A stretch of DNA of 62,906 nucleotides, filler included, from Perkinsus chesapeaki ATCC PRA-425 (Eukaryota > Protista > Perkinsozoa): the NCBI GenBank assembly GCA_013115145.1. It is 3 parts of 3 records of this genome, joined end to end, with 100 filler letters (N's around TTAATTAATTAA, not from the genome) between each part and the next. Parts side by side here need not be neighbours in the genome. Positions count along the whole stretch, not along the records: positions 37,122 to 62,906 come from JAAPAO010000519.1; 2 more parts are not named here. One strand, written 5' to 3'. The notes beneath the pieces were generated by a model. It ran no database searches and was not told where the DNA came from. It worked only from the letters and a program-made list of their open reading frames with translations. The first letter of the stretch is position 1. Every line of letters starts with the position of its first letter. This document shows positions 43,601 through 62,784 of the stretch, piece by piece. A program made the position numbers and the translations under genes.

Positions 43601-46414
43601 CTATGAAACTATAGCAGATCCCTCTGCTGCGTTACATGCTTCTTTTAGCGCTTCCCATCCATCCTGGCAGCCGTCCTCATCAATGCTCAGCTGCGCTGTG
43701 GCCAAGGCCGCTCTGATATCGGCTCCTGTGAATCCAACCTCACCAGAGAGCAACGCTACGAGCTCGCCTGACCAACCAGATGGGGCTGTGGCTAACACTG
43801 ACTCAAGGTCCTCGAAGCCATGGACAGCATGCTCGAGGACATCCATCAGATCTGCCTTTCCGGAAGGTAGGTCGCAGAGCAGACTGATATCAAGTCGACC
43901 GGGCCTGGAGAGTGCAGGGTCCACCATATCGGGCCGACTAGTAGCTGCCACTACAAACACAGGGCTATCAGATACCTCAACACCGTCTAGGTAGGTGAGC
44001 ATTTGATTAACGACACGGTCAGTTACTCCAGTAGAGTCAGCCCCTCTTACAGGGCACAAGGCATCGACCTCATCGAAGAAGAGGACGCAGGGTGCTCTAG
44101 ACCGTGCCTTGGCGAATGTCTCCCTTACTCTGGCCTCACTACCACCGATGTACTTAGACAGGAGCTCTGGCCCTCTTACGGCAACTACTGGGAGGCCACA
44201 CTCCTTCGCAACCGCCATCGCCAGGGCTGTCTTGCCGCAACCTGGAGGTCCGACAAGCATTGCTCCTTTTGGGACAAGGACACCTCCGCACAGTGAAGGA
44301 TACTTCAACGGCAGCTGGATAGCATCCATAAGCTTATCAGTGGCCTGCCGAATGCTCCTCCCTCCTAGATGGCTCAGCTGGTACTCGGCCGTGGTGGTCC
44401 TGTCTTGGTCCTCGTTACGGCGGCGCTCTCGGAGATCCACACCAGTCCTGGCCAGAACCGATACCTCTCTGAGAGTGTAGCCCTCTCCTTTGTCTGAGCC
44501 CAGTATGGCCAGACGGTCCTTCACACTGAGAGTCGCCGGGAGATTGATGCAGCTACAACTAAGGCCTTCCAAGCCGGTGGCCGACTCCGCGGTGCTCAAG
44601 ATAACCATGGACCGAGTGGGGCGCAAATGGAGCTCTAGTGCATCCCGGAAGATGCTCGCGAGGACCTTACTCCGGTTCTGTGGGACAGAAGTAGCGCCGC
44701 TGCCCTGCTGAGGCCGAAGACCTAGTAATACGTCAACACCGTCAAGTAGGAGGACACTGGGCGGGTCGTAGGTGGAGGCGAATTTAAGGGCACCAAAGAG
44801 AGCCTTCTTAACCACGGTGAACTTGAACCTTTCAGCAGAGGCCAGCTGAGCACAGTCAACATCAACAACAGTGTAGCCTAGGTCTCTCACAGCATAATGT
44901 GCTACTGTGCTCTTACCACATCCAGAGGGGCCAGTCACCATTATACTGGGCACCGGCAAGGAGGCGGGAATTCGACCGGAGACGGCAGCCGAGATAAAAG
45001 AGGATACCTCGTTTGATACCTTCTCCAAGGACAGTGGTGGCCTCTCGAATGCCCGGCATGCCCGATAGGTCTTCACCACACTTAAGGCTTCGACAGGTAC
45101 GAACGACCGTATAGGATTGCGAGGCTCCACGGCAACGGCAACAGCGCTGTCGACTTTGGCGTTGAGACCGACACTCCCCCCGGCACCATTAGAGAGCATT
45201 TGTGGCATAACCAAGCATAAGTCGGATGCGGCCTGGTCGGGAAAGGTAACCTTCACGTCGACCCAATCCGACTGGTGACATGTCTCCGCCGCACCCTCCT
45301 CCTCATCTGGGTACTCTAGTTCCGGTAACGTGCCTTCGCCATCCAACAGCATGGGGCTGGCAGCAGCTTGAACAGCTGGGCCGTGGTGGTCAAGGCTTTT
45401 ACCGTTTATAAGGGTCTCTGTCCCAGGCGGACGTCTGAGCCTAATCCAACCGCCATTCTGAAGGACTAGGCACTTGAGCCTCCGTAGAGTGTCCGTAAAT
45501 ACACTACGGATATCACCGGGATAGGTAGCGGTGACCAAGGTGATCTCGGATGGCAGGACAGGCTCCTTGGTGTAGGCCTTCACCAACACTGGGGCTGCCT
45601 CCTGTACAACATCCGGGTAATGGGCCGCCAACAGTGGATGCAGGAGAGCGTATCCAGGGTCGACGAGATCGTTATTGACCACACAAGGCGCTATTATGGC
45701 GTCGCCGAGCTGGACAACTCCGGTGGTTACCCCAGCGCTCCGGTGAAGAACGCAGGTGACCGCGAATTTGTCGTACAAATCCATCGGAAAAACATCGCCA
45801 TCGCAGACTATTCGGCAGAGGCGCTTGACCTCAGCGCTGGAGTCCGGCACCAGCAGCTTCCTGGGCCGAGCCTCGATCGCCAGCTCATCCGAGTCGGACA
45901 GTAACCGGAAGGGCACGCTATTCTGCTGACCGTCAGACGCGTCCCAAACAGCCTCCATGAAGATGGGCTTCCCGCCGCCCTCCGGCCATAAGGGGAACTT
46001 GAGCCCAGGATAGAGTACTGCTATCTGGGAAAGCAACGCTGATTCCAGATACTGAGCTTGTAGCTCTACTACTTCCCAGTCATCGCTGCTACATGGCCGG
46101 ATAACTATTGGTTCGGTATTCTTAGCAACTTTATCCACCCCCGAGAGCTCAAGCAGTTGCCCCTCCACCCATCCCAGCGCCGATGCAAAGGGCTTAGATA
46201 CCTCCACAGTACCTTTATTAGTTGCCGAGTGTCCGGCCCAGCCAACATACTGATCGCTGCCGGCCGTAGACGGTTTCACTTTGACTACACGGCAGAAGTG
46301 ACCGGTGCTGGCAAGGCCGTGGAAGAGGGAATGACTGTCATCTGGATGTAGCGATATGAAGTCGCCAGTAGTGACGGTCTTTATGGATACTTTGAGTTTA
46401 ACCAGGGATGACAT
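43601..46414 (-). CDS. PEX1: Peroxisome biogenesis AAA ATPase PEX1, single exon, 937 aa
   Basis: PEX1-N motif IRPCSSDDWEVVELQAQYLESALLSQI; D1 Walker A GPSGCGKS; D2 GPPGCGKT, VRGPELLSKYIGGSE, FFDEVD, DRVVNQMLTYLDGVE, DPALSRPGRLD. Confidence 0.92.
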   Translation of the reverse strand: MSSLVKLKVSIKTVTTGDFISLHPDDSHSLFHGLASTGHFCRVVKVKPSTAGSDQYVGWAGHSATNKGTVEVSKPFASALGWVEGQLLELSGVDKVAKNTEPIVIRPCSSDDWEVVELQAQYLESALLSQIAVLYPGLKFPLWPEGGGKPIFMEAVWDASDGQQNSVPFRLLSDSDELAIEARPRKLLVPDSSAEVKRLCRIVCDGDVFPMDLYDKFAVTCVLHRSAGVTTGVVQLGDAIIAPCVVNNDLVDPGYALLHPLLAAHYPDVVQEAAPVLVKAYTKEPVLPSEITLVTATYPGDIRSVFTDTLRRLKCLVLQNGGWIRLRRPPGTETLINGKSLDHHGPAVQAAASPMLLDGEGTLPELEYPDEEEGAAETCHQSDWVDVKVTFPDQAASDLCLVMPQMLSNGAGGSVGLNAKVDSAVAVAVEPRNPIRSFVPVEALSVVKTYRACRAFERPPLSLEKVSNEVSSFISAAVSGRIPASLPVPSIMVTGPSGCGKSTVAHYAVRDLGYTVVDVDCAQLASAERFKFTVVKKALFGALKFASTYDPPSVLLLDGVDVLLGLRPQQGSGATSVPQNRSKVLASIFRDALELHLRPTRSMVILSTAESATGLEGLSCSCINLPATLSVKDRLAILGSDKGEGYTLREVSVLARTGVDLRERRRNEDQDRTTTAEYQLSHLGGRSIRQATDKLMDAIQLPLKYPSLCGGVLVPKGAMLVGPPGCGKTALAMAVAKECGLPVVAVRGPELLSKYIGGSEARVRETFAKARSRAPCVLFFDEVDALCPVRGADSTGVTDRVVNQMLTYLDGVEVSDSPVFVVAATSRPDMVDPALSRPGRLDISLLCDLPSGKADLMDVLEHAVHGFEDLESVLATAPSGWSGELVALLSGEVGFTGADIRAALATAQLSIDEDGCQDGWEALKEACNAAEGSAIVS

Positions 46415-47034
46415 ATAACAAAAAATGAACCTGAGGGAAAGTGATGCAGACAGCAGGGAGGAGCCTCGAATGTTGACAGGATAACGGAGAGCCGTTTAGG
46501 AATCAAATCAGATGCTCTACGGGCTGACACGCCCTCTGAAATTTCACGGATATGCAATCAGGTTAAGAAGGCCTTTATTTCCATGCTTGAGCCGCCGTCG
46601 CGCCGATATTTGCGGCGCGCGTGCCAATCTGCACGCATGCACATGCCTTCACCCTGACTTACAAAATATCTTTCCTTTGTAGTGAAAGTCACTGCGTTCA
46701 CGGCGCAGATTAATGGCAGAGGTCTAGGCTTCGCTAGATTCCGGGTTCAGTCGGGTGTCTCGTTTAATGCTCCGATCAGGCTCAGGGAACCGTTTGGGCG
46801 TCAAATGGTAGCAGTTTCGAAGAGGTGGAGTTCGTTGGATAAGATTCCAAAAAGGTTACTAAATAGACCTTCCCCATTAAGATGCGTTGAGTGGCGCAGT
46901 TAAAGCGCAATGTAATGAACACAATTGTCCCATTATTGCCATCTTTCTGTGTTCTGGCTAGCAACTCCTCCTCCATTGTTCCTCTTCAACTTCATCTTGT
47001 AGTGTTATTTGATTTAAAGCAGTTAAAGCAAACA
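46415..47034. promoter_or_regulatory. Putative bidirectional promoter region between PEX1 and the GPx-Grx gene
   Basis: Head-to-head ATGs 620 bp apart; positional inference only. Confidence 0.35.
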
Positions 47035-48426
47035 ATGGGAGGAGTGCAGAGCGCGATCGGCTTTGGTGCCACCAAGCCACGCGTCACTGTCGACAGCTTC
47101 TACAAGCTATCAGCCCCGCTGATCAACGGCGAGGTTCTTAACTTCGAGAAGCTTCGTGGTAAGTCGTCGGTGGTCTCAGTATCGATATCCATTTATCTTT
47201 TCAGGTGATGTTGTCCTTGTGGCCAATGTCGCATCCAAATGAGGCTTAACTCAGGCCCAATACAAGCTCTTCGGGGAGCTGGGCCAGAAATTCGGGGACA
47301 GGGGTTTCAAAATCGTCGGTTTCCCCAGCCGGTAAGAAGAGCATCTTGTGAAGGCTCAACAACACTGTTATTTCAGACAATTCCTCAACCAGGAGATGAA
47401 GACTAACAAGGAGATCGATGACTTTGTCACAGATATCCTTAAGCCTTATCCAGATGTTAAGGATAAGGTCTTCCTTTTAGCGGAGCCTTGTGATGTTAAT
47501 GGTGATAATGCTTCACCAGTCTTTGAGTAAGTCACCTGCCCATCTATGGCTCTCGTTGGTATTATTTCTTTCCTCTCTGATATGTTTAACGAAATTATGT
47601 AATACAGCAGTCTATGCCAGTCGTTACATTCAGTGTACTCCTCGGTATTTACCCATACACAATCTTAATGCCGTCACATTACATTTTATAGCAGTCATTA
47701 TTGAACTCTTCGACTGCTTTTGCCCTCAACATTTCCTATCGTTTTGTGTACAGGTTCCTTAAGTATCACTCTGGACTGTATGACCCTAAGTCAGGCAAGT
47801 CCAAGCCTATTCCCTGGAACTTTGGCAAGTTCCTTGTCGATCAGAAGTAAGAAACTCAAGTCACCAAATGATAGTATATTGCATCTTTTCAGTGGTGAAG
47901 TAGTATGCTTCTGGAGCCCTAAGGAGTCGTCTATCGCTGATGATATCGAGGCGTGCTTAGATGGCAAACTTAAGGACAAGAAGATCGCTACTGAGGCTGA
48001 TGACGAAAAGAAGGCTTCTACTATGACACCTGAACAGGTAAGATATCTGACTGCCTAGTGGCAGCGAATGTTGTGCTTGCTAGGCTAAGAAGTTCGTTGA
48101 GGATAAAATAAATGGCCCAAGCACCGCCGTAGACTTCACACTATCTTATTGCCCACATTGCAAGGCATCGATTGCTAGTCTAAAGGATGTAAGTCACTCT
48201 ATTAACCTCTAAAGCATCTTACGGTTTCGTTTGTTAGCTCACCGACTCTTTGGATATCGTCGAGGTTGACACCATGGAGAACGGTGATGCTGTTAAAGAG
48301 GCTGTGAAGGCTATCACCGGCCAGAAGACCTTCCCTCAAGTATTTCTCAAAGGCAAATTCATCGGTGGCAACAGCGAGCTTCAAGGCTTGATTTCTGATG
48401 GAAAAGCCAAAGAAATGATTCAGTAA
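47035..48426 (+). CDS. Selenocysteine glutathione peroxidase-glutaredoxin fusion, 310 aa, Sec54
   Basis: Exons 47035-47158, 47205-47331, 47377-47526, 47754-47846, 47893-48037, 48084-48188, 48238-48426 sum to 933 nt in frame. Motifs VLVANVASK-U(TGA 47240-47242)-GLT, GFPSRQFLNQE, DVNG, IPWNFGKFLVD, then Grx SYCPHC, TGQKTFPQVF, FIGGNSEL. Confidence 0.93.
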
Positions 48427-48474
48427 ACTCTCAGTAGTCGCCGAGACCCGAGCGGCCTCTTTGAGGGCCAGTAA

Positions 48475-48543
48475 GGGACGAATGAAGGTTCCATGGCAAA
48501 CTATATAGTCCGTTGAGCCTGATATATAACCGTCACTGTCCCC
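48475..48543 (+). promoter_or_regulatory. Eukaryotic SECIS element (form 2-like) in the 3' UTR of the GPx-Grx gene
   Basis: ATGA at 48482, 12 nt to apical AAA (48498-48500), mini-stem CTATATAG, helix II GGTTC.ATGG/CCGT.GAGCC, 3' TGAT at 48520, basal helix GACG/CGTC or GGGAC/GTCCC. Confidence 0.88.
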
Positions 48544-48699
48544 GAAGATGGTTGTTCATTGCTGGCTTAATAAGAGTGCCCGCGAAGGTTGAGGGCTGCA
48601 CTTGAGGTTTTACAGGATTTGTCCTGTTAGCTCTGGGAGTTTCGTTAGTATCAATTCAATAGAAGGCCTTCACTGAAGGGCTTGTTGGTGGTGGAGTTA

Positions 48700-50904
48700 A
48701 TGCCAATTAGCTGCTTCGGCGGGGTATGTGGTAGTAAGGACCGGCGGCGGGGGCGGAGGTCTAGTGAGAATCACTACAGTCAAACTGAAAGAGGCTTCGA
48801 GGGAGGAGGGTCTTCGGATAGGCAAGGCTCTTACTCTGAATGCTGCCATTCAATTGATAATATTGATACCTTATCAAATAGAAGCTCTGGCCGCCTCAGC
48901 TTAGATGGGGACCTCTTCATCACCGGTCATACCATTTGTGTAGATTATCAGAAATGCAATGAGCAGCCTGTTCTAGGGCAGGGGGGAGGATGTGCCGTGG
49001 TGGAGGTATGGAAGTGTCTTAAGGACGGCACACTAGTAGGTGGACAGTAGACCCTTGGGCGATGAGGATAGGGTTAATAGGTTGCGGTGAAGAGCATTGA
49101 CAAGAGTAGACCAGAATGGCGAATTGAAGTTGGTATGCTTAAAAGGGTCTGTCCTCATCCCAATATATGTTCAATAAAAGCAGTTTACATTGATAACACT
49201 ATGGTGAGATTGGTCATGGACTTCTGTGATTCAGGCACCCTCCTGTCCAGGGTCCTACAGGTAGTATCTTCTAGTTCGTATTAGGGCCTACCTGGGGCAG
49301 GTCACTTCTGGGACCACTCGTCGACACACCTCACCGGGGTTCCATCCAGCTAGACGCTCCCCTAGTTTTGGCAATACCCTCTTACCGCCGACAACATCAG
49401 TTGGTGGATCAGACGGCCCGGCCCTCCCCCCCAGTGAGACCGTCACTCGGTAGCCCAAACAGGCACGAAGCTCGCTTCTCAGTTAGAGACTCTCGTCCAG
49501 CGTCTCCTAGTGGCTCCCCGAGCCCAATTTCTCGATCACCATTGAGCTTAGCATTACGACTACTATCCAATTCCAGTGGTGGCTCGCCGTCCCCAACGGC
49601 CTCCGAGAGAGTTAGGGCGTGTCCTATGGAGGAGACGGAGGCCAAGAAATTTATGCGACATCTTTTCCAGGCACTCCAACAGTAAGTGATACGAGTTTAT
49701 ATTCCCCCTTGGTGTGCATGTCGCAACGTTCGGCTGGGTTGCGGTAGCGTGACGTTTGAGGGGTACGTTGATACATCTAGAGACATACTAGGGCGGTGTT
49801 ATAGACAGCAGCTGAAGGGAACTGACTACAATTGTTATTGAGACGTTGTGTGGAGTAGCACTCCCTGTCCTAGCTCATTAAGGCATGTACTATAGAAGTG
49901 CACCCAGCCTACTATACGACTCGGCACGTTCTGCAAAATTTTGATAATGTGTTGAGGATCTTGCGCTGGTTGCCGCTGCCGTCCTTCTTCTGTGAATGAT
50001 ATGTCGCCGTATCTTTATTTTAGGTGTCATTCCTGTGGTGTAATACACCGAGATGTTAAACTAGAGAATATAGTTATACAGGAGGATGAGCACGGCGATG
50101 ATGAAGTTGCCAAGCTTATAGACTTTGGTTTATCTCTGAGAGCTCGAAGCAAGCAAGGAGTTGTCGATAAGCACATTGCTGGGTCCGTACATTATTTAGC
50201 ACCGGAGTGTATCAGGAAAGGAAGGTACTACCCGTCGGCGGGGCATGGCATAGGGAGATAACCATCTTAAGATACTCCTTCGCCTCCGACATGTGGGCAG
50301 CGGGGGTAGTGCTCCACCTGCTCCTACGGCCATCAGTGCCCCCAGCAGCGGCTGCCGACAATAAGGCTATCATGAAGAGGATAAGTCTGATGGATCTCGA
50401 AGGTCTCGGCCAGAATGTGTCGAAGGAGGCCAGGGACCTTAGGAGCAGACTACTGTCGCTGTATCCGGATAGCAGGTAAGAGATGGAGCAGCATGCCTTA
50501 GAGTCCACCAAGTGAGTAGGTTAACTGCCGATGAAGCTCTACGGCATCCTTGGATCACACAATGCTTTGATGATGATGATCTCACTAGTGGGAGTAATCT
50601 ACCTAGGCTCGAGGGAAGCGACGATGAAACTGCCTATCGGTTACAGGCGGCGTCATCGACGGCCTCGTGGGATCCTGAGGACCGCCCTCAAAGGCAACCG
50701 CTACGTCGATGCACATCACCTGGGTTTGGCATGTCTCATAGGGCAATGTCCAGTCCTATGAATCGTAATGTAGAGTGTCGGTCGGCTGTACAAAGGCCTC
50801 TCGGTGATGGTGACCCTGTTATTATTGTCACACCGGTGTCGTCCTCTAGCTCTCCCAACTCGCCTCCTATGAAGAAGAACTCCGCCAATACCAGATCTAC
50901 TTGA
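48700..50904 (+). CDS. CAMK-like Ser/Thr protein kinase, multi-exon
   Basis: LGQGGGCAVV, VAVKSIDK, HPNIC, LVMDFC, IHRDVKLENI, LIDFGLS, GSVHYLAPE, SDMWAAGVV, RLTADEALRHPW. Confidence 0.88.
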
Positions 50905-54133: not shown

Positions 54134-56320
54134 CTACTTATTTACGTAGAATCGGGCCAATGCGCCGTGCTCAGCTCGAGCAGCCTCGAGGCTCTTCTCT
54201 TCAACATCCACCTTACTCTCACCAGCTCTTCTCGCCCTCTTCTTCCTTTCCGCATCCCCCCGCATCTTATTCATCCTTTGCTGCCGTTTGCCTGCCTTCG
54301 ACTTCCCCCTCATCTTGTGCTTGGCGTTGAACGACTCCTCGTCATCCTCATCACTCTCGTCGCTCTCCCAGGCCGGTTTGGCGGCCTTCTTCTGGGGGGG
54401 CGCCACTCGACCAATAAAGTTGGCATCGAGGGCGATCATATCAGGCTGGAGCTTCTCGAGCAGGCTGCGGACTTGAGTCTCCCGACGCTGCTTAGTAGTC
54501 TCGAAGGGATTGGCCACATAGGAGTCGAACTGCGTGTATCCAGCACCAGGGACTAACATTGAACCAAAGCCCCCGCTGGTCCCGACCAAGAGAAGGTCCT
54601 CGTAGGGCACAAAGCGGACACTTGACACCTGATTGACAGACTTCTTTTTATCAGACCGCCTGTCAATTGCGAACTCACCAGCTGGCCAGAGTAACTGTTC
54701 TTCAAATATGTACTGGGGGCCTTGCCGCTCCTGAACACATCAGCACCTCGGAAGACCGAAACGCTGGAGCCGAAGCCGAAGGCTAAGTCGGCATCCCCGA
54801 ACGAAATGTCCATCGACGTGGGAGCTCGACCAGAAAAGCTGCACCGTTGGAGCTCCTCAGAGGGCTTTCGTAAATCATACCTATGTGTCGATTACCGACT
54901 GCTACACCCAAGCTCCTAGTATTACACTTTCCATTTACTGTCGCTGCCACACGTTACAAGATACTTTCCATCGCTCGTGACATCCAGAGCTGTTACCTGC
55001 CATACCACTCTTTCCCTAAATCAGTCTACCGTTACTACCTGTCCGAAGTGTGCCAGCATCTTCATTGCCGGCTCCTTCATGTTCGGTGTCCACATACATA
55101 CATGCCCTCTGGTATGCCCTGTTGCTATAACAGCATTCGACGGGTTCTGTCGCATAGACTGTATCGGTCCTTGCCTCGTAACAATCTTAGCCACATGTTG
55201 CCCAGTGGACTGAAATGCACCACCACTCCCCTCCACCCATCATCCACCATCATTAGTACCACGTCCCTATACCGGATCTCCCCTGTCTCCGAGGCGCTGA
55301 CCAACAGATAGTGCTTCGGTAGGAACTCCAAGTGAGTGCTGTTCATATGGTCCTTTAAGCAGTGTACTTCTGCTCCTGTTGCCGAGTCGTAGATGTACCT
55401 GCCAGCCCCGTCTCGTATCCCCTATCGGGCGTCCTCATGCTGGCTTACGTATATTTCCGTTGGGCCGCCGCAAACAAGGTTTGGTCATGGAGGAATGTGA
55501 CGTCGATAATAGGCTCATCAAGCTGCTCCGAACAGAGAGGGTTCATACTGTGACGGTCCAGAACCTGTAGAGCGTGCACTAGGGATACCCCCAAGACTCC
55601 ACTTACAGTGAACTGGCCTCCGCGGGAGCCCACGACCATATACCGGCCGTTGGTGCTGGTATTGACGGTGAACGGGCCACCAGGGAGATTGAAATCGAAG
55701 AGCTTTCGCTTCGTGCCGATGTCAACCTACAACAGCACGTCATGGTAACGTGGCCAAAGCACTTGGTTAGACCTGTGATGCCAGCTCCTTCTGAGTGAGG
55801 TTGTAGGTTTTACGAACACCGTCATCCATCTCGATGCCACCCGCATCCTCGTTCCTCTGAAATATCTCCGTGGCAACAAGCTGGGCCTCATCAGCTTCCT
55901 GTATCATAGATTTCTGACGAAGTTCCCTCCTCTGTTTCAATGACTTTGCCATCTTTTTAACACCTATCATAGACAACAAGATAGCCCTTCCAGAATACGG
56001 ACGAGCCCGATGCACAATCATAGCAAGTTCATGCTGCCTTAGGCTGGAATGAGGCAGACAATACCAAACCAGTTCGATACTGGTCAGTTCCAGCGGCCGA
56101 CACCCCGACTGGGATTAAATAGAAACGCCGCGGCGTTGGCCCCACCGTAACTACTACCCTTCTTCCCTAAATGATCCACCTTCCTATATTTCTTGGCAAT
56201 GTCTCTAAAGGTCTTATTATCCAGCTTAACTCTGCCATCATCATTCACAGCCACATGGACCTCCTGTGCCTCTAGACGCTGCCGTTTTGGTGGCTCGGCT
56301 GCTGTGGCCTCAGTGGACAT
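54134..56320 (-). CDS. WDR46: WD40-repeat rRNA processing factor WDR46/Utp7 (BING4 C-terminal domain)
   Basis: DVTFLHDQTLFAAAQRKY, HLEFLPKHYLLVS, MRQNPSNAVIATGHTRG, VRFVPYEDLLLVG, SMLVPGAG, NPFETTKQRRETQVRSLLEKLQPDMI. Confidence 0.92.
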
Positions 56321-61789: not shown

Positions 61790-62094
61790 TGTGAATGGAA
61801 TACCTTCTGTTCAAGGCAAGCGTATGACGATGACACTACTGTCAGTAACAGTAGGCAGCAGCAGCAGCAGCAGCCTGTGAGTTATACAAATGAAGGAACG
61901 ATTGTACTGATGAGGACGTACGATAGATATTAGCTTAGACAACTGGTGGTGAAATAGACCACGAGGAGGAGAGAAAAGATACAGATGGCATTTTTGGTCC
62001 TCTGACTAGAAGGTCTAATAGAGACAACAGATATCAGTTCATTTACAATGAATGATAGTAGACCAGTAGACATCATCATAATAAAATTATACGG

Positions 62095-62784
62095 TTAGGG
62101 GACGCCTGAGGTCCCTGCTGCTGTTCCATCACTAGTGGAGGCCGTTGAGTCCGAGGATATTGATCTCTGGTACATGGAGGACTTGTAGTCGCACAAAACG
62201 AAAGTAGTGTGTCGACGGACCGTCATGATACGCTCTAGGTTATCGAAAACGGTACGAAGCTGAGGGGCCAACATTCCACGATGGAGCCCTCGGGAAAATC
62301 TAACACACTTGACAAAGCCTTCGGGAACGTACTTACTGAGGACCTTGGCATTGTTTAGCACCGACGTCCTCCAGCTCATAAGGACTACGTGAATAGAGGG
62401 ATCTCCGAGGCTTACAACGGCCTCTTTTAGGGACGAGCCACATGTTGACTTCGACGTGTGAATGAACTGAAATCTTCTTCTTAATACGTTGGCAATGTCC
62501 ACGGGAAGATAGTTCCGTATAGAGTTGGCGAACAATCCGGGCTCGTGCTCTGACAATATAAACAGACCGTCATTACGGCACTTCAAGAGAAGCTCAGTGA
62601 GTAGACTGGATAATGTTGCTGTATAGTCCTTGGAGAGGCTCTGACCAGGCGGCACTTCATTGCTTTGGATGGCAGAGGTGGGAAAAAGGACATCATCCCA
62701 CTCGATAAAGACGCAACAGTTAGCTGGTGGCAAGACTGCTGATTGCAACATGGATTCGGTATCCGAATCAATAGGAGGTATCAT
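62095..62784 (-). CDS. HAD-like protein of the DWDDTL family, motif I degenerate (EWDDVL)
   Basis: VFIEWDDVLFPTS near the N-terminus, an alpha/beta pattern, and C-terminal VKCVRF...LAPQLRTVFDNLERI. Single exon. Confidence 0.5.
   Translation of the reverse strand: MIPPIDSDTESMLQSAVLPPANCCVFIEWDDVLFPTSAIQSNEVPPGQSLSKDYTATLSSLLTELLLKCRNDGLFILSEHEPGLFANSIRNYLPVDIANVLRRRFQFIHTSKSTCGSSLKEAVVSLGDPSIHVVLMSWRTSVLNNAKVLSKYVPEGFVKCVRFSRGLHRGMLAPQLRTVFDNLERIMTVRRHTTFVLCDYKSSMYQRSISSDSTASTSDGTAAGTSGVP

Follow-up and report, generated by a model that had tools for sequence, protein, structure and literature searches.

A probable selenocysteine-containing glutathione peroxidase fused to a dithiol glutaredoxin in Perkinsus

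A 62,906-nucleotide stretch of DNA from Perkinsus chesapeaki ATCC PRA-425 (assembly GCA_013115145.1; three genome parts joined end to end with filler, hereafter the window) carries a seven-exon gene on its plus strand at positions 47035–48426, within the 25.8-kb piece that derives from JAAPAO010000519.1. In all likelihood, as far as sequence can tell, the gene encodes a selenocysteine (Sec)-containing glutathione peroxidase (GPx) fused to a glutaredoxin (Grx). Members of the genus Perkinsus rank among the major pathogens of oysters and clams. On the sequence evidence set out below, the locus is a real, conserved selenoprotein gene that has been mis-annotated in public databases and whose GPx–Grx architecture is uncharacterised. 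The case is built on an in-frame TGA that occupies the peroxidatic position of the GPx domain, on the conservation of that codon and of the reading frame on both sides of it in three Perkinsus lineages, and on a Sec insertion sequence (SECIS)-like element that lies shortly past the stop codon.

Splicing at the seven exons yields a coding sequence (CDS) of 933 nt, comprising 310 codons and a terminal TAA. All six introns run from GT to AG and measure 46, 45, 227, 46, 46 and 49 nt, respectively, and the sole internal stop of the joined CDS is a TGA at codon 54, within the motif NVASK-U-GLT (U denoting Sec; coordinates are given in Table 1). The predicted product is a protein of 310 residues and ∼34 kDa, encoded by a nuclear gene of a Perkinsus-type alveolate. 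The ATG at 47035 is taken as the start codon since two of the orthologous loci described below (L001 and L002) carry an in-frame TAA at −9. The same TAA rules out a longer N-terminus arising from an upstream in-frame open reading frame (ORF) at 46891. The N-terminal sequence, MGG[V/M/L]QSA, is conserved across the loci, and Gly2 and Ser6 of its MGGxQS core fit the N-myristoylation consensus, which suggests that the protein is N-myristoylated and associated with membranes. TGA is not a general sense codon in this genome, since it is absent in frame from the adjacent 937-codon Pex1 ORF, compared with 12 and 26 occurrences in the other two frames of that ORF.

Four orthologous loci were compared with the window, three of them from Perkinsus olseni assemblies (L001, L003 and L004) and one from a Logan assembly of another run (L002), giving five loci in three lineages. 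Pex1 is found upstream on the opposite strand at all four and in the window, and an annotated protein kinase gene lies downstream in the three P. olseni loci, with kinase exons likewise downstream in the window. All loci possess the seven exons and the SECIS-like element, with canonical splice sites at the same positions, and the differences in exon length are multiples of three, reflecting in-frame insertions or deletions in the linker between the two domains and a C-terminus that is three residues longer in the orthologues. Codon 54 is TGA in five of the five loci, and the frame is open from the GPx domain through the linker and into the Grx domain. Since the exon structure, the TGA and the frame are repeated at four independent orthologous loci, they exceed what chance would produce. 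Exons share 71–96% nucleotide identity, compared with 53–67% for most introns (forced global alignments), and intron lengths vary between lineages. Intron 3 (47527–47753) is 227 nt long in the window and 48–49 nt in the other loci (∼20% identity), a lineage-specific insertion among otherwise uniformly short introns.

Between the window and the other lineages, the overall synonymous rate (dS) is 0.8–1.3, and the dS values place the window nearer to P. olseni than L002 is. The ratio of the nonsynonymous to the synonymous rate (dN/dS), again for the window versus the other lineages, is 0.06–0.22 for codons 1–53, 0.03–0.04 for the part of the GPx domain that follows the TGA and 0.07–0.08 for the Grx domain, and rises to ∼0.4–0.5 in the linker. 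The locus therefore combines an in-frame UGA at the Sec/Cys position with coding conservation on both sides, as expected of a selenoprotein gene. Moreover, the linker remains open while tolerating in-frame insertions and deletions, which argues for translation of the two domains as one polypeptide. Both domains exceed the Pfam gathering score on a single predicted P. olseni chain that lacks exon 2 (P0158), with 52.0 versus 22.9 bits for Glutaredoxin and 28.4 versus 27 bits for GSHPx.

The SECIS-like stem-loop is of type II and lies in the 3′ untranslated region (UTR), beginning 48 nt past the stop codon, which in the mRNA places it ∼0.8 kb away from the UGA. It consists of helix I (48474–48480 paired with 48531–48537), an ATGA core (48482–48485), helix II (48486–48496 paired with 48510–48520), an unpaired AA(A) (48498–48500) followed by a mini-stem, and a TGAT (48520–48523). 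An Rfam search of positions 48380–49700 returned SECIS_1 as the best plus-strand match (48473–48534; 19.3 bits), and its ATGA core, AAA and TGAT each align to the family consensus. The E value of 1.2 applies to all 4227 families and corresponds, by our arithmetic, to ∼3e-4 for SECIS_1 alone. The match was obtained on this restricted interval; when all 25.8 kb of the piece were searched, Rfam gave no SECIS at E≤10. The unconstrained minimum free energy fold of 48466–48548 adopts the SECIS shape, with helix I, an internal loop, a helix II of ∼11 pairs, an unpaired AA and the mini-stem. When both strands of the 25.8-kb piece were scanned for the SECIS pattern combined with duplex energy, this was the sole site at or below −12 kcal/mol, where shuffled sequences give 0.05 sites per strand.

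Comparison of the loci is consistent with the same structure. In a four-sequence alignment of the element, the ATGA, AAA and TGAT are invariant, and 92.5% of the cells are paired in the proposed structure, compared with 21–40% when the partners are slid. Two pairs are compensatory (G-C/U-A in helix I and C-G/U-A in the mini-stem) and three pairs of helix II are changed on one side only. A covariance model built from the four copies, which is mostly a sequence model and hence a weak test, detected no further site in either the window or the loci. The element is very probably a SECIS, and we infer that the UGA is recoded as Sec through it.

The identity of the N-terminal domain was assessed by searching the exons separately. 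Positions 34–60 of the GSHPx profile (PF00255) match exon 2 downstream of the TGA (E 1.2e-3) and positions 63–104 match exon 3 (E 2e-4), so that the matches are collinear, each scoring below the gathering score when taken alone. The catalytic tetrad is complete and invariant in the five loci, and consists of U54, Q89 (in NQE, 47387–47395) and W155 and N156 (in WNF, 47815–47823). The NQE glutamine aligns to position 80 in bovine GPx1 (chain 1gp1), the catalytic Gln80, and the human GPx4 numbering agrees with the choice of NQE. An RQF motif was also considered as the source of the catalytic glutamine and was dropped after this alignment. The position of the resolving cysteine (DFVCTRF in poplar Gpx5) reads DFVTDI, with threonine in all lineages, so the protein lacks the feature that defines the thioredoxin-dependent 2-Cys enzymes. 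Because threonine replaces this cysteine, a thioredoxin-type resolving mechanism is unexpected and a reductant of the glutathione (GSH) or Grx type is favoured. Among solved structures, the C-terminal half of the domain is closest to plant Gpx5 and to GPx4-type monomeric enzymes (GPx matches in the PDB to E 2.5e-8). A GPx1-like insertion, LKPYPDVKDK, precedes the EPCDVNG segment. No peroxiredoxin (Prx) family match was reported in the Pfam searches and the domain is GSHPx, which places the protein outside the bacterial Prx–Grx hybrids (PGdx).

The GPx domain is followed by a charged linker of ∼22 residues and then by the Grx domain. Positions 4–20 of the Glutaredoxin profile (PF00462) match exon 6 and positions 27–60 match exon 7 (E 2.3e-7), again in collinear order. 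The CPHC active site, the TFP motif (48328–48336) and the GG motif (48364–48378) are conserved across the loci. The closest solved structure to exon 7 is the yeast dithiol Grx2 (E 1.5e-12), with further matches to the Grx domains of thioredoxin glutathione reductase (TGR) and of the Prx–Grx hybrid 1nm3. The profile match, the CxxC, the cis-proline motif of the TVP type and the GG motif together identify the domain as a class I dithiol glutaredoxin. Its active site is unusual in that Grx proteins usually have CPYC or CPFC. A methionine at the boundary between linker and Grx (Met209) is conserved in all lineages and may be the trace of a start codon from a once separate Grx gene, or an internal start.

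These results bear out the gene structure put forward by the original prediction, an earlier reading of the same DNA that had proposed a Sec-GPx, hidden by its TGA, joined to a dithiol Grx. The seven exons that it joined in frame to 310 residues are recovered as an intact 933-nt CDS with GT–AG introns throughout. The in-frame TGA that it placed at the GPx catalytic position recurs in the four orthologous loci, and the tetrad that it listed (U, the Q of NQE, and the W and N of WNF) is found in full, the choice of glutamine agreeing with the 1gp1 alignment. The charged linker and the complete Grx domain (CPHC, TFP and GG) were likewise located, with collinear Pfam matches. It had also asked whether GSHPx and Glutaredoxin occur on one chain, a combination present on the predicted chain P0158. 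The structural proposal is now backed by the SECIS-like element, by conservation under purifying selection in three lineages and by the presence of both Pfam domains on P0158. The mechanism that it suggested, in which the oxidised selenol would be recycled with GSH by the protein's own Grx, is a proposal by analogy.

A second RNA feature was found in the coding region around the UGA. Codons were counted as informative when their amino acid was both conserved and degenerate in the three lineages. Of the 38 such codons between codons 50 and 88, only 4 are variable, compared with 123 of 215 elsewhere (scan permutation 0/20000; Fisher p=3.8e-8). In this zone, the spliced mRNA folds into an invariant hairpin (CDS nt 174–205) that begins 11 nt after the TGA, and the three substitutions of the zone that lie nearest to the TGA (CDS nt 168, 171 and 207) fall outside it. 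The UGA-adjacent elements of some animal selenoprotein mRNAs are placed likewise. Such Sec redefinition elements (SREs) resemble the present hairpin in being conserved stem-loops a few nt past the Sec UGA that overlap coding sequence and are seen as synonymous constraint. The present hairpin differs in its spacing of 11 nt, its unrelated sequence and its protist host. It probably aids Sec recoding, as a candidate element of the Sec-redefinition type. The zone also contains a second hairpin with a 7-bp stem (GUCGGUU/AGCCGAC; 47315–47378, spliced), which can form only after removal of intron 2 since its 3′ arm crosses the junction of exons 2 and 3. In addition, the Sec TGA shares bases with an ATG (A-ATG-A), from which an alternative-frame ORF runs on the plus strand (47239–47406), 40 codons long in the spliced mRNA.

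Several observations speak against a Sec-GPx–Grx fusion or against parts of it. The SECIS_1 score of 19.3 bits lies under the curated gathering score of 35, and the covariation within the element comes from only four sequences in three lineages, so that it is statistically weak though consistent with the structure. A tRNA scan of the 25.8-kb piece found no tRNA genes, a search for RNA runs that contain the stretch returned none, and two small RNA runs from the same species contained nothing that matches it. The hairpin near the UGA, being invariant, is without covariation support and has a modest folding z-score of about −2.2. Electron transfer from Grx to Sec is proposed purely by analogy. 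Lastly, the conservation of Met209 leaves room for a separately translated Grx. This last point bears on the possibility that the locus makes two products, in place of the fusion or alongside it, namely a stand-alone GPx through retention of intron 5 and a stand-alone Grx made either from an internal start at Met209 or from an internal trans-splice or transcription start. The gene model would then have created part of the apparent fusion. Constraint is lowest in the linker, and retention of intron 5 would lead to a stop after 6–16 extra codons, soon past the GPx domain. However, the linker frame is open in all five loci despite in-frame insertions and deletions and near-saturated dS, and no stop follows the GPx domain itself. 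Intron 5 has GT–AG borders at the same position in all lineages, a length that is not a multiple of three and an unconserved sequence (59–62% identity), and independent gene callers combined exons of both domains into one chain in each of three P. olseni assemblies. We regard two separate products as improbable, and a fusion remains the preferred reading of the exons.

The TGA itself could be a true stop, in which case the gene would be decaying or truncated, or would be translated only from Met91, in the style of a 224-residue P. olseni prediction, to give a Grx attached to a dead half-GPx. Public predictions do begin at Met91 or omit exon 2, and the sub-threshold Rfam score of the SECIS would fit. 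Yet codons 1–53, ahead of the TGA, are under purifying selection and encode the canonical N-terminal GPx strands up to NVASK, the TGA sits exactly at the catalytic Cys/Sec position and has been kept in three lineages at dS ∼1, the exon that bears it is the best conserved of the seven, and a conserved and unique SECIS-like element follows the stop codon. A true stop is accordingly very hard to credit. Even less credible is a sequencing or assembly error in a Cys codon (TGC or TGT) of an ordinary Cys-GPx–Grx, a possibility that the original prediction had itself raised and for which a single-base error would suffice; the same TGA in the window and in four independently assembled loci (three from P. 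olseni and the Logan assembly) refutes it for practical purposes. Both readings of the TGA are ruled out in the same way by the purifying selection that flanks the conserved codon on both sides. Recoding by the hairpin is a different matter, as the frozen synonymous codons 50–88 might instead reflect splicing signals for very short introns, the overlapping ORF at 47239 or some other RNA role. The zone does extend to the boundary of exons 2 and 3, an ORF does begin mechanically at 47239 in another frame, and the hairpin has the shortcomings given above. In contrast, the constraint is centred on the UGA with the invariant hairpin starting 11 nt beyond, and the other six exons, with similarly short introns, show no such zone. 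By our codon reading, the substitutions at CDS nt 168, 171 and 207 are synonymous in the GPx frame and nonsynonymous in the alternative frame, for which reason the overlapping ORF was rejected as the source of the constraint and is probably not coding. A cause other than recoding for the zone as a whole is thus considered rather unlikely, though it deserves more weight than any of the rival gene readings, and the hairpin is kept as a probable aid to Sec insertion.

Table 1. Positions in the window of the exons of the predicted Sec-GPx–Grx gene and of its candidate RNA elements.
Feature	Position	Strand	Content	Basis
Exon 1	47035..47158	+	ATG start, MGG[V/M/L]QSA N-terminus, first GPx strand	Splicing; conserved in orthologues
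Exon 2	47205..47331	+	Sec exon, NVASK-U-GLT...GFPS	94–96% nucleotide identity to orthologues, highest of all exons
Predicted Sec codon	47240..47242	+	In-frame TGA, codon 54, peroxidatic position	Same codon in L001–L004
Synonymous-constraint zone	47228..47389	+	Codons 50–88: end of exon 2 and start of exon 3, across intron 2 (spliced out)	Codon variation count
Candidate mRNA hairpin	47254..47285	+	Invariant; 6 bp, internal loop, 5 bp, tetraloop	Fold of spliced mRNA
Exon 3	47377..47526	+	GPx core, catalytic Gln (NQE, Q89), Thr replacing resolving Cys	Pfam; alignments
Exon 4	47754..47846	+	WNF motif (W155, N156); short GPx4-like loop, without oligomerisation loop	Structure matches
Exon 5	47893..48037	+	Last GPx strand and helix, charged linker (47972–48037), conserved Met209 opening the Grx domain	Splicing; orthologues
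Exon 6	48084..48188	+	First Grx helix, CPHC active site (48150–48161)	Pfam
Exon 7	48238..48426	+	GSH-binding half of Grx (GQKTFP, GGNSE), TAA stop	Pfam Glutaredoxin E 2.3e-7; yeast Grx2 E 1.5e-12
SECIS-like element	48474..48537	+	3′ UTR, type II	Rfam SECIS_1; minimum free energy fold; pattern scan; conservation

Public databases already contain the gene in distorted form. Three different and incorrect P. olseni models exist, all named 'Glutathione peroxidase 7' (L001 5964–6841 and L003 3001–4253; P0003, P0158 and P0159). One of them, P0003, has 224 residues, begins at the methionine after the TGA (Met91) and spans the remaining GPx exons, the linker and the Grx; a 288-residue model runs into intron 1 and omits the Sec exon, and a 164-residue model ends early. 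These errors come from the reading of the Sec codon as a stop. No protein from the genome of the window itself surfaced in the searches made, and the gene seems to be unannotated or fragmented there. The earlier description of the selenoprotein as hidden therefore holds in part: Sec is absent from the public models, whereas the architecture was already present in databases as the mis-predicted, uncharacterised P. olseni proteins.

The fusion was sought elsewhere by several routes. Exon 7 was used for an exhaustive HMMER search over 1.84 billion representatives, which gave P0003 as the one close relative (82% identity); among the best 150 of the 785 matches, GPx motifs were present only in this P. 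olseni orthologue. Word-index searches with the whole of P0003, with its GPx half and with the Grx half of P0158 returned only the P. olseni cluster or plain small Grx proteins. None of the Atlas clusters of at least 50 members combines GSHPx with Glutaredoxin, the nearest fused architecture being bacterial AhpC-TSA with Grx, and 20 metagenomic GPx loci showed no similarity to Grx. Searches of this kind cannot exclude distant fusions. No description of a GPx–Grx fusion or of a Perkinsus selenoproteome was found in searches of the literature, nor did these yield anything particular to Perkinsus on the Sec machinery (tRNA-Sec, SPS2, EFSec, SBP2, PSTK and SepSecS). The earlier statement that no characterised Sec-GPx–Grx fusion is known is in keeping with this outcome, as none was found outside Perkinsus in the protein searches and none in the literature. 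The components are each well known and, judging from these searches, the fusion seems to be confined to one genus.

The predicted protein resembles three known systems in different ways. With the monomeric Sec enzymes of the GPx4/PHGPx type (PF00255) it shares the NVAS-x-U-G-x-T Sec site, the glutamine of xQE, the tryptophan and asparagine of WNF, the lack of a resolving cysteine, the short loop at the site of the oligomerisation loop and, very probably, a 3′-UTR SECIS. Unlike these enzymes, it has an additional C-terminal Grx, an N-terminus of the myristoylation type and the GPx1-like LKPYPDVKDK insertion, and its sequence is divergent, to the extent that a word-index search with the C-terminal half of the GPx domain found no relative outside Perkinsus. 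In Prx–Grx hybrids such as Haemophilus influenzae HI0572 (PDB 1nm3), the Grx regenerates the peroxidase with GSH. They share with the present protein an N-terminal thiol-type peroxidase and a C-terminal Grx on one chain, and the Grx of 1nm3 matches exon 7. However, the hybrids are bacterial and contain a Cys peroxiredoxin rather than a Sec GPx, with no UGA recoding, so that the Perkinsus protein is an analogue and not a member. TGR is likewise a eukaryotic selenoenzyme fused to a class I Grx, and its Grx domains match exon 7, but the Grx of TGR precedes a flavoprotein reductase in the chain and its Sec is the penultimate residue at the C-terminus; electrons flow in a different direction, and the chemistry differs as well.

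By analogy with the Prx–Grx hybrids, we propose that U54 would reduce H2O2 or a lipid hydroperoxide and be converted to the selenenic acid. GSH would then form an Se-SG adduct on U54, which the tethered Grx would deglutathionylate, either within the chain or between subunits; as an alternative route, Cys236 of the Grx might attack the selenenic acid directly. Since the GPx domain has no resolving cysteine, the intermediate would have to be resolved by a GSH/Grx route. Re-reduction of the Grx by GSH would complete a peroxidase that is self-contained and GSH-dependent, in analogy to the bacterial hybrids, and N-myristoylation would place the enzyme at membranes, where it would act on lipid hydroperoxides. 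Glutaredoxin has reportedly been found to donate electrons to a mammalian Sec-GPx. We consider the chances of this Grx-recycling mechanism to be about even. The best overall explanation, which joins the highly probable fusion gene to the recycling mechanism, is held to be likely, a grade that is a compromise between its two parts.

The gene has several neighbours in the window. Immediately upstream, on the minus strand (43601–46414), an intronless 937-residue ORF with PEX-1N and two AAA domains encodes the peroxisome-biogenesis ATPase Pex1. Downstream on the plus strand (∼49600–50900), protein-kinase exons (HRDVKLENI, and DFG near 50040–50230) match the Pkinase gene downstream in the P. olseni loci. 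Further away, an ORF on the minus strand (54134–54628) contains a BING4CT (NUC141) domain (E 2.9e-29) and is probably an exon of a gene for a U3 small nucleolar ribonucleoprotein component. A weak Rfam match resembling a fluoride riboswitch on the minus strand at 62060–62124 (20.3 bits versus a gathering score of 34; E 0.15) is most likely due to chance.

The original prediction had placed the enzyme in a parasite, which fits its source in Perkinsus. According to one report (PMC6642578), Perkinsus has no catalase and depends on ascorbate peroxidase, so that its peroxide defence would rest on ascorbate together with thiol or selenol peroxidases, and a plausible role exists for an enzyme of the latter type. 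Tethering a Grx to a Sec-GPx would make for a compact peroxidase driven by GSH, for which no characterised counterpart was found. Such an enzyme would carry the 'peroxidase plus own reductant' design of the bacterial Prx–Grx hybrids over to selenoproteins and the GPx family. The locus also illustrates clearly how a selenoprotein can be mis-annotated, and it offers a very probable protist SECIS together with a candidate UGA-proximal recoding element. More tentatively, and at a strength that falls short of a probable claim, perkinsids may have evolved a new class of GPx, an N-myristoylated Sec enzyme with a built-in Grx reductant in which UGA decoding is aided by a hairpin in the coding region in addition to the SECIS. 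If true, it would be the first Grx-coupled Sec-GPx and would provide the first example of an SRE-like element from a protist, both belonging to a parasite that reportedly lacks catalase and must survive the oxidative burst of host haemocytes.

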